Of a stretch of 64,000 nt of DNA, positions 60,727 to 64,000 are shown in pieces. Location: assembly GCA_964057225.1 (NCBI GenBank), contig OZ059899.1:14446001-14510000 (forward strand), read 5' to 3'. The notes under the pieces are model-generated. The model searched no databases. It had not been told where the DNA came from and saw nothing but the letters and a program-made list of their open reading frames with translations. The stretch is from Auanema rhodensis. Lineage: Eukaryota > Animalia > Nematoda. Every line of letters begins with the position of its first letter. Position 1 is the stretch's first letter. The translations under genes were made by a program, and so were the position numbers.

Positions 60727-62079
60727 ATGCCTCGTTCTCGTTCAGTGAGCAGATCTCGAAGCCCATCTGTGGATAATAAGGTCGGTTTTGCTTCTTTTTC
60801 TTTGCGTTCGCGGTGGTTGTGTGTGCGTACTTGGCCCTTTAATTTTGACATTGCACACGATATACATATCAGATATGAATGATAATCGGATCAAGAACAA
60901 GACCTTTATTCTGACAAGAAAGAACAAGAAAGAAAATGGAGAAGATTATAACAGAAGACTTTAAACATAGAGAAGATTTTTAAGAAGTACAAGAATTCAC
61001 ATCGTTGGATATTTCAAGATCCCTATGTGAGACGGTGAGTGGCGTCTTCGCCACAGTAGTTGTCCTCTATTCTGGGGATTTTTAGGATGAAATTTAAAAT
61101 TGTTTCATTGCAATCTTTGAAAGTTACTGCTTTAGGGCCGAAACTCAGCCTCTCGTTCTCGCTCTCGAAGTAGATCAGCTTCTGTGTCGGCCAGACGAGA
61201 CCGGTCTCGTTCTCGATCTCGTTCGCCCTACAGATCTCCGTAAGTTTGATTTTTTGTTCGCAACTTTATTAAAAGTAACTTTTAGACCAAGAAGAAATAG
61301 GCGCAGCAGATCCCGCTCTCCCCGTTATCGTGGTGGAGGGGGTGGAAGAAAAGGAGGCGCATGGGCTTCAAATCGTAATAGAGAAAATCCAGATCCAAAC
61401 AAGTAAGCTTCTTCGTTTCTTAAAAACTTAAGCTGTTGTTTTTGCGTGTTCCAGTTGTGTTGGTATCTTCAATTTAAGTGTATATACAACAGAGAAAGAC
61501 TTACGCGACGTCTTTGGGAAATATGGAGAGATAGAAAAGGTTAGACCATAACTGATAAATGTTGTTATAACTATAAGTTTTTTTTACAGTGCGAGTTGGT
61601 CTATGACCATCCTACAGGACGTTCTCGTGGATTTGGGTTTATATATTTTGAGAGATTGGAGGATGCTACTGCTGCCAGGGATACATTGAACGGGACGGAA
61701 GTAGATGGGCAAAAGGTAACTTGGTCTATGAATATGAATTTATATTTTATTTCTTCAGATTCGTGTTGATTACTCTATCACTAGAAGAGCCCATACTCCT
61801 ACTCCAGGACAGTACATGGGCAGCTCCAGGGGAAGAAGACGAGAGTACGGTGATCACCGGTATACTATTAATCATATAATTTCACATAAAAATAATTTCT
61901 TTAGTGGTAAGCGTGATTCGTATAGAGATGGCTATAAGGATTCATATAGAAGAAGAAGCCCATCGCCACGTCGCAGGTAATTTTTCTTCTGTTTATAATA
62001 TTTTAACATAACAAACTTCAGCAGACGTTCTCCTTCTCCGAGATATGACCGCAGACGTAGCCGCTCCCGTTCATATTAA
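60727..62079 (+). CDS. rsp-8: Transformer-2 family SR splicing factor
   Basis: RS1-RRM-RS2 layout with [33 protein letters not shown] and [21 protein letters not shown], ending RSRSRSY*. Confidence 0.96.
60873..61034 (+). other. Candidate poison (PTC) cassette exon in rsp-8 intron 1
   Basis: ATCAG acceptor, strong ACG/GTGAGT donor, in-frame ATA-TGA stop at codon 2, and about ten AGAA motifs. Confidence 0.75.
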
Positions 62080-62220
62080 TTACTTGTTTTTTTTTCTTTT
62101 TGTTTCCATTACTTTGTTACCCTATTCCATGTTAATTGCTGTAGTTCTAAATGGTCTCAATAAACCGCGTGTTGCTTTATCTATTTACAATTTATACAAA
62201 AAGAGGCTACAGGTCAAAGA

Positions 62221-62955
62221 TCATGTATTCGGTAATTTCCTGTACACTTCGATGAAAATTTCTGGAACTCCTGTCTCCTGCTCTTGTTCCATCTTCAATA
62301 GTTTTCTTCTGTACTTCTCCTGTCGTTGCCAAATAAGGTCTCTGAATTGGATCATTAAAAGAAATGGAAAAGATCCCTACCTTCTTAACATAGCTTTTTC
62401 TTCACGTTCCAACTTTTCGTGCCGTTTTATATATAGATCAGAGCTTGTTTTTTCCTCGCAATGTTTTGTTCCACGCAGGGGGCATAGAGGTTCCATCTAA
62501 AACAAATCCGAAAAAGTCAGAGAAAAATGATTATGTCATACGATCCGAAACTTCGGCACTTGTACTTCTTCATGTTTCACCACCAAATCGGGATTTTCAA
62601 ACATTATCTCAAAATAAAATCGCGATTATTAATGGTTATAATTAAAAACCTTATTCGGGCAAATAGTGTGTTCCACTGATGTGTCAACGTTTTCCTTTTG
62701 AGAAGGTGATTTGTTGTTACTTCGAAGAGGACGCATAATTTTATTCTGTAAAGTACAAGTAAATGTTGGGAAGAAAGTTATGAAAACAACCTCAGATTTG
62801 AGTCCACACCCTTGATTAGGAGAGTTGAATGCTTCCAAAACACCTTTCGTTGTAGTTAATTTGCCTTTTTTATGCTGTCTGGTTTTTTTGTCATTTTCTT
62901 TGATTATCCTATTTTCTTCTATTTTTTTAACTTTTTTTCTGCGACCTAGTGGCAT
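62221..62955 (-). CDS. PEHE-domain protein, MSL1-like (187 aa)
   Basis: Exons 62791-62955, 62650-62745, 62542-62607, 62381-62496 and 62221-62341 total 564 nt in frame. VQVPKFR...EEKTSSDLYIKRHEKLEREEKAMLRRDLIWQRQEKYRRKL carries the P-E-H-E signature. Confidence 0.8.
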
Positions 62956-63594
62956 TTTACCAGTAGCAAGAAATTCTAAAATAGGAAAATAGACGAAAAA
63001 GGTAAATTTCAATTGCAATATAGATAAAATTCAAAAAGGAAATTGAGATAAGACTTGTCTTCGTAATGATTTTAAAACCTTCTAGAACAGTTTTAATGAG
63101 ATGATAGCAAGAATGAACGAATTCACATGAATTGCTTACTAAAACTTCAAAGATTCTCCTTGAAACAGAAAAATTGTGGTGTTTCAGTTTGAAAAATCAG
63201 GCGTGACAATTTGTGTCAGCACTTTTCTGACGCCATGAAAAAGCTCGACGCTGGCAAATGTGCTTCGCGACGGAAATGGCATATTACGTACTATGCTTTT
63301 GAAATGAATATATTAGTTACTTAATTATTTATAAATTTTTTACTTTGTAATTAAATTTATTTGTATGAGCATTATAACTGGGATAATATTCAACAATATA
63401 TTTGAAAATTGGAAAGCTGATAGGGTGCCTAATAGGGAATCGACAGTGTGTGAAAAACATATATAGTTGTTTAATTAATTTAAGTGTAAAACTCGTATAA
63501 AATATATAATTACTTTAATAGAAATGTTCAAGTTTAATAATTTACATGTATAATTTAAAAAAATTTTTCTTCATCAAAGACATTTGGGGGTGAT

Positions 63595-63872
63595 TTATGC
63601 TGACACTTTCTTTAAAGAACTAAGTCCACCGGCTTTTCGAATTTCTGCCATTAAACTTCCAACTAAATCCGAAGGCATAGGAGCCTGCTTTTCCACCTAA
63701 ACAATTGATTAATTTCTGTTTTTTTTAATTTTCAAATACTGGACTGGTTTTCTTAAGGATTGCTTTCTGATTGATCAAATCTCGTGAATTGATAAGTGGC
63801 GGAGCAACAGGAGGCGATGGTGGAACATTGTTATTATTAGATATGCTAGGTAGCCGCTTCGTGTTTGACGTG
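63595..63872 (-). CDS. 3' end of a proline-rich, WH2-domain actin regulator (5' part beyond the window)
   Basis: Exon 63740-63872 encodes VPPSPPVAPP...QKAILKKT; exon 63595-63696 encodes SLMAEIRKAGGLSSLKKVSA*. Confidence 0.7.
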
Positions 63873-64000
63873 CTGAAATTTAAAAAATGAATTCTGGTTA
63901 TTTTCGTGACGTGACATCTTTTTTTTAAAACGTATGTTGCTCGATAAAGCGAATTTCATTTTTGTATTGTAATTGGCGTTAACCCGGTTGGTCATGAGAT

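Follow-up and report, generated by a model that had tools for sequence, protein, structure and literature searches.

A minimal, expressed PEHE protein of the nematode Auanema rhodensis and its probable role as a MOF/MYS-2-binding cofactor

Does a small gene near the end of the 64,000-nucleotide stretch of the Auanema rhodensis genome analyzed here (the window; contig OZ059899.1, positions 14,446,001 to 14,510,000) encode the kind of protein on which the histone acetyltransferase MOF depends in other animals? The PEHE module is the part through which MSL1 and KANSL1 hold and activate MOF, and MOF in other animals requires a PEHE partner for its activity on nucleosomes; to our knowledge, KANSL1 is the only other class of MOF-binding PEHE protein besides MSL1. 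An NSL1 protein was not identifiable in the nematode proteome (Hoe and Nicholas 2014, PMC4588387), and NSL1/KANSL1 was likewise not found in C. elegans by Beurton et al. (2019, PMC6868398), who reported that WDR-5.1 associates with MYS-2 (the MOF orthologue), SUMV-1, SUMV-2, MCRS-1, and OGT-1. Members of the MOF-MSL complex have been described as lacking or not uncovered in C. elegans, and H4K16 acetylation in this species has been attributed to MYS-1/Tip60 rather than to MYS-2 (Lau et al. 2016, PMC5070013). The first-pass annotation of the window, made from the letters alone, had pointed to a minimal MSL1-like PEHE protein.

Contigs of four runs (X1–X4) from one study were surveyed over 61000–64000; that their records describe RNA is a guess, but the contigs are spliced and are therefore transcript assemblies. 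In each run, one contig of 610–651 nt covers the span of the gene, confirming a five-exon mRNA of about 650 nt on the minus strand (62981..62165), with the joints 62341|62381, 62496|62542, 62607|62650, and 62745|62791, all of the GT..AG type. The ATG lies at 62955 and the stop codon at 62223–62221, and the coding exons of 165, 96, 66, 116, and 118 bases add up to 561 coding bases, that is, 187 codons plus the stop. The peptides quoted in the annotation are thus present once the introns, confirmed by the contigs, have been removed, and the proposed length of 187 residues is borne out by the same contigs. The surroundings are AT-rich (33.5% G+C) and of nematode type, and the introns measure about 45 nt. 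The 3′ ends of the contigs lie at 62165–62175 and their 5′ ends at 62977–62981, at a splice acceptor, tttag|aattt (62976|62975; the acceptor itself occupying 62976..62980), so placed as to receive a trans-spliced leader. Three of the contigs have one mismatch and five unaligned letters at the 5′ end, a pattern that would fit the SL1 end TTTGAG (..CCAAGTTTGAG) in place of the genomic TTTTAG, suggesting that the leader may be SL1. The exon starts at 62975, 20 nt ahead of the ATG, which is the first one past the trans-splice site. No upstream exon of the gene was seen in the transcript contigs, and because these end at the acceptor, the first ATG follows it, and the transcript of the next gene upstream ends at around 63370, we conclude that no 5′ exon has been missed, an eventuality that would have turned the protein into a conventional full-length one.

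This upstream gene, on the same strand (63369–63700), encodes a WH2-like final peptide (open frame 63595–63696), and its transcript stops about 390 nt ahead of the trans-splice site; the two genes probably form separate units and not a tight operon. On the opposite side, a convergent rsp-8/Tra2-like gene on the plus strand has contig 3′ ends at 62174–62179, overlapping the 3′ end of the PEHE gene by up to about 10–15 bases. An exon of this gene starting at 61135 receives two different upstream exons: a contig of run X2 joins 61033 to 61135, and one of run X3 has 30 letters ahead of 61134 that lie outside 61000–64000. These joints are consistent with a cassette exon ending at 61033.

The five coding exons (all on the minus strand) differ clearly in character. 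Exon 1 (62791..62955, 55 codons) is basic, as the annotation had noted of the N-terminus, with 16 Lys and Arg residues and an NLS-like RRKKVKK run; it has no Pfam match. Exon 2 (62650..62745, 32 codons) is devoid of a domain recognizable by Pfam. The last ten codons of exon 3 (62542..62607, 22 codons) encode EEVQVPKFRI (62542–62571), which matches the N-terminal VPxWR strand of PEHE in the profile comparison described below. Exon 4 (62381..62496, 38 codons and two bases) holds the PEHE core, its residues E15–K34 (62395–62454) including KRHEKLEREEK, and exon 5 (62221..62341, one base, 39 codons, and the stop) continues the predicted helix and ends with a tail containing FIEVYRKLP (62230–62256).

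Homology was tested exon by exon, on single-exon peptides. For exon 4 (39 residues), PEHE (PF15275) is the sole Pfam match (E 0.023, 15.6 bits, profile positions 20–45 of 127), below the Pfam cut-off of 34 bits, which is set for the whole domain; exons 3 and 5, each scored singly, gave no Pfam match. Against MSL1, exon 4 is aligned by BLASTP with E 3e-4 and 9 of 20 residues identical, and its Smith–Waterman score of 49 compares with 22.4 ± 4.2 for shuffled sequences, one of 2000 reaching as high, whereas BLASTP gave no alignment of exon 5 with MSL1, this exon being without similarity of its own. The MSL1 PEHE string quoted in the annotation proved exact for the chains 2y0m_B and 4dnc_D of the Protein Data Bank.

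A more sensitive comparison was obtained from the family itself, whose members were sought by looking in metagenome contigs for the core motif K-R-H-x-K-L-E-x-[DE]-E-K in back-translated form. Seven of the 11 loci found are invertebrate MSL1-type PEHE exons or transcripts, and the long open frames in two of the loci (L004 and L007) reach 64.5 and 68.3 bits with the Pfam PEHE profile. A further locus (L006; ERZ786672 NODE-3614, 191–223) is a mouse-type MSL1 exon that agrees with 2y0m_B at every position seen; it probably stems from a host or a contaminant and was left out of the family alignment. The invertebrate pieces were aligned with exon 4 (alignment A2), exons 3 and 5 being left out because MAFFT had stacked the separate exon rows in an earlier alignment (A1). 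A search with A2 retrieved 200 proteins of 105–332 residues, and among the matches listed (120 of 200) all 120 carry PF15275 and the core KRH-K.E-E[KR]. A local profile of 252 nodes was built from 92 of these MSL1-type PEHE proteins, with a minor circularity in that exon 4 was one of the eight rows of the alignment by which they had been gathered. On this profile, exon 4 matches nodes 135–154 (14.9 bits by hmmsearch; 33.0 raw emission bits, against a mean of 12.3 and a maximum of 20.1 for shuffles), and the last 19 residues of exon 3 match nodes 104–122, which end in VPsWri (19.6 raw bits; shuffles 10.1 ± 1.7, maximum 14.7). Placed in the register that exon 4 dictates, the head of exon 5 falls on nodes 160–180 (7.4 bits, P 0.019). 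The tail FIEVYRKLP corresponds to 'eieVqeklp' at nodes 205–213 with 12.5 bits, a value reached by five of 400 shuffles when the place is limited to nodes 181–252; over the whole profile it is not significant. The claim that the match runs into the helix past the HxxxE core thus holds weakly, in the score of the exon 5 head, and finds no counterpart in BLASTP. The four blocks (exon 3, exon 4, exon 5 head, and tail) are colinear with the profile, and since exon 3 reaches node 122, at or near which exon 4 begins, the blocks are also continuous across the intron.

Six columns are invariant in a 40-sequence family alignment (A3), namely E188, R198, H199, E203, E206, and K210, and five of them are kept in exon 4 as E15, R25, H26, E30, and E33, when mapped through the profile alignment. 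VPKFRI, E15, R25–H26, E30, and E33 follow one another in the order and with the spacing seen in the family. The gene is expressed and conserves key residues of the family, and its product is a real, minimal PEHE protein, whose homology to the PEHE family can be held, on these sequence comparisons, with high confidence.

The nature of this protein is best appreciated by comparison with MSL1, for which structures with MOF (PDB 2y0m chain B and 4dnc chain D) and with MSL3 (2y0n chain E) are available. Like MSL1, the nematode protein has a VPxWR-type strand and an EPL motif, followed at an almost identical distance (23 residues from VPxFR to KRH, against 24 in MSL1) by the [FY]xKRHxKLExxEK core and a long helix. 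When exon 4 and exon 5 were each modeled alone by AlphaFold2, exon 4 was predicted as coil over residues 1–17 and helix over 18–37, and exon 5 as helix over residues 2–23, a break at G-V-P, and a short helix over 27–35, giving a predicted α-helix of about 45 residues (62272..62445) that intron 4 interrupts in the DNA. Taking residue n of exon 4 as residue 481+n of MSL1, a register derived from W520 as given in a preprint and from the 4dnc sequence, this predicted helix (from residue 18 of exon 4 to residue 23 of exon 5) would cover the positions of the MSL1 anchor helix D500–K541, which contacts nucleosomal DNA via R516 and R519 (10.64898/2026.03.03.709310). In the alignment, R519 (R38 of exon 4), D521, R526, and R529 of MSL1 correspond to R, D, R, and K, respectively, whereas MSL1 RRKRW is replaced by AMLRR, so that two nearly invariant residues are changed (R516 to Ala and W520 to Arg). 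An MSL1-type KRH-KLE-EK core leading into a long basic helix, the latter as predicted, is accordingly found in the nematode protein.

What is lacking is equally clear. The nematode protein, with 187 residues against about 300–600 for MSL1, has no counterpart of the MSL1 coiled coil used for MSL2 binding and dimerization (profile nodes 1–47), as the annotation had supposed; exon 1 aligns only with the K/E-rich linker at nodes 58–90, by composition. Downstream, a profile search of the PDB identified profile positions 198–246 with the MSL1 chain of 2y0n, in complex with the MRG domain of MSL3. Of this segment, the nematode protein shares the short FIEVxxKLP block at its start (the 12.5-bit match of the tail, a weak one) and ends after KLPNT; VxAFG and FxLPW, which make up the bulk of the MRG-binding segment and occur in 43 and 63, respectively, of the 120 family members listed among the 200 matches, are absent, and no FxLP motif occurs in any exon. 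The MRG-domain partner that had been proposed alongside MYS-2 is for this reason unlikely. A resemblance of exon 2 (MRPLRSNNKSPSQKENVDTSV) to the EPLRD...DDSV stretch of MSL1 (VEPLRDPNPSDLLENLDDSV), with a Smith–Waterman score of 34 equaled by 14 of 2000 shuffles, was judged to be due to chance because it does not follow the order of the PEHE blocks and exon 2 shows no similarity to exon 4.

Descent from KANSL1 rather than from MSL1 was considered as well. KANSL1, a protein of about 1100 residues, carries a WIN motif and sites at which the other NSL subunits bind, and the nematode protein is without this motif, those sites, and the long (about 1000-residue) disordered scaffold. It resembles KANSL1 in the C-terminal position of PEHE, in a PxWR strand, and in an acidic–aromatic–H–E core. 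One reading is therefore that it is a reduced nematode descendant of KANSL1/NSL1, the missing NSL subunit of C. elegans, linking MYS-2 to SUMV-1, SUMV-2, MCRS-1, and WDR-5.1. Homologues of NSL2, NSL3, and MCRS1 co-purify with MYS-2 and WDR-5.1 while NSL1 has not been found (PMC4588387, PMC6868398), and no MSL2 or MSL3 is known in nematodes (PMC5070013), which would favor this descent, as would the C-terminal PEHE. KANSL1-type sequences were fetched with a KANSL1 query fragment (94 bits on Pfam PEHE), which served only this purpose and brought up 20 fragments from the database, among them one listed as KIAA1267 of Cricetulus griseus (Chinese hamster); fragments P0127–P0134, 97% identical to mammalian KANSL1, were excluded. 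The KANSL1-type core reads LH/RH-K-C/Y-E-E-x-ER-A-RW and turns proline-rich past RW, whereas the nematode core, KRH-KLE-EK as in all 120 MSL1-type matches listed, differs from that of fragments P0122–P0140 and leads into the long predicted helix. Exon 4 scores 49 by Smith–Waterman against mammalian MSL1 and only 28–37 against the KANSL1-type fragments, a comparison made uneven by the set consisting of vertebrate fragments only. The WIN motif for WDR5 binding, AR[ASTC] (A-R-[A/S/T/C]; Dias et al. 2014, PMC4018492), is absent from every exon. In a tree calculated from 38 exon-4 columns, exon 4 stands on the MSL1 side of a 98/97 split from the KANSL1-type sequences, on a very long branch; because the AU test does not reject the grouping of exon 4 with the latter (p 0.53), the tree was not used as support. 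Taken together, the protein leans, by a modest preponderance, to the MSL1 type, on the basis of the motif, the helix, and the tail and not of phylogeny, and its descent from KANSL1 appears unlikely. The class named in the annotation is hence favored, though not decided, by the core, the predicted helix, and the Smith–Waterman scores.

That a charged helix in an unrelated small basic nuclear protein merely mimics the PEHE core would be compatible with the K/R/E-rich composition, with an exon 4 score under the Pfam gathering score, with the dependence of the exon 5 head and tail on positional priors for their significance, and with the failure of the searches below to find relatives. Against this, exons 3 and 4, as independent blocks, exceed every profile shuffle, in the right order and with boundaries continuous on the profile; five of the six residues invariant in the family are retained; and the exon 4 frame is the single best of the 2836 six-frame pieces of the AT-rich window on the PEHE profile (14.9 bits, the next scoring 7.7). 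Together with the BLASTP, Smith–Waterman, and Pfam values of exon 4, this places the PEHE-type resemblance of exon 4 beyond chance and makes mere coincidence very improbable.

None of the searches made here found a nematode relative of the protein. The N-terminal open frame (exon 1, intron 1, and exon 2) gave no relatives in a word search and no matches in a search for related loci in metagenomes, and phmmer with exons 4 and 5 against the PDB returned nothing relevant. Against 1.84 billion representative sequences, phmmer with exon 4 yielded no true match at E ≤ 0.001, its sole match (P0001) being a spurious repeat protein, and it follows that the species' own protein is absent from that collection. 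A query of 39 residues is blind to orthologues below about 55% identity, so that absence from C. elegans is not implied. The supplementary tables of Beurton et al. (PMC6868398), when searched for C18D11, gave genomic-region rows only, with none in the table of WDR-5.1 interactors. In Table S3 of that work (WDR-5.1 immunoprecipitation), several proteins of unknown function, including supr-1, C16H3.3, F44E2.7, uev-3, attf-5, and F54D11.4, rank among the NSL subunits with zero control counts. Missing partners of NSL or MOF in C. elegans may be among these candidates; none of them could be linked to the PEHE gene.

From its architecture, we consider it probable that the Auanema protein is a minimal MOF/MYS-2-binding cofactor in which the HAT-docking strand and the long helix have been kept and the scaffold parts of MSL1 and KANSL1 are gone. 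The N-terminal 100 residues or so, basic and probably disordered, with the NLS-like run, would direct the protein to the nucleus. They are followed by the putative MOF-binding part of PEHE, comprising the extended VPKFRI...EPL segment and the helix of about 45 residues with KRHEKLEREEK. This module is predicted to bind the HAT domain of the MOF orthologue of nematodes in the manner of MSL1 in 2y0m and 4dnc and to activate it, the basic helix helping the enzyme to engage nucleosomes. With neither a coiled coil nor a WIN motif, and with most of the MRG-binding segment missing, the protein would not form the platform of a complete MSL or NSL complex but would serve MOF as a small cofactor or adaptor. 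It may have a part in H4K16 acetylation, as had been suggested in the annotation; in C. elegans, this mark has been attributed to MYS-1/Tip60 rather than to MYS-2 (PMC5070013). It is highly improbable that a PEHE-only protein, cut down to the MOF-binding part with truncated partner-binding regions, instead occupies the PEHE-binding surface of MOF as a competitor limiting its entry into larger complexes, as no larger nematode PEHE protein is known with which it could compete and the nucleosome-contacting basic helix of MSL1 is partly kept, which fits an activator better.

A more specific version of the cofactor proposal may be put forward tentatively: the PEHE-only mini-protein could be the missing nematode partner of MYS-2, an MSL1-derived adaptor that replaces both MSL1 and KANSL1, with scaffolding left to SUMV-1, SUMV-2, and others. 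A single protein would then supply only the HAT-docking strand and the nucleosome-anchoring helix. As such, the nematode PEHE protein offers a concrete candidate for the PEHE partner of MYS-2, reported as not found in C. elegans, and may be used as a query for the C. elegans counterpart. It would represent a natural minimal version showing which parts of MSL1 suffice or, if confined to its lineage, would instead illustrate the extreme reduction that a scaffold protein can undergo.
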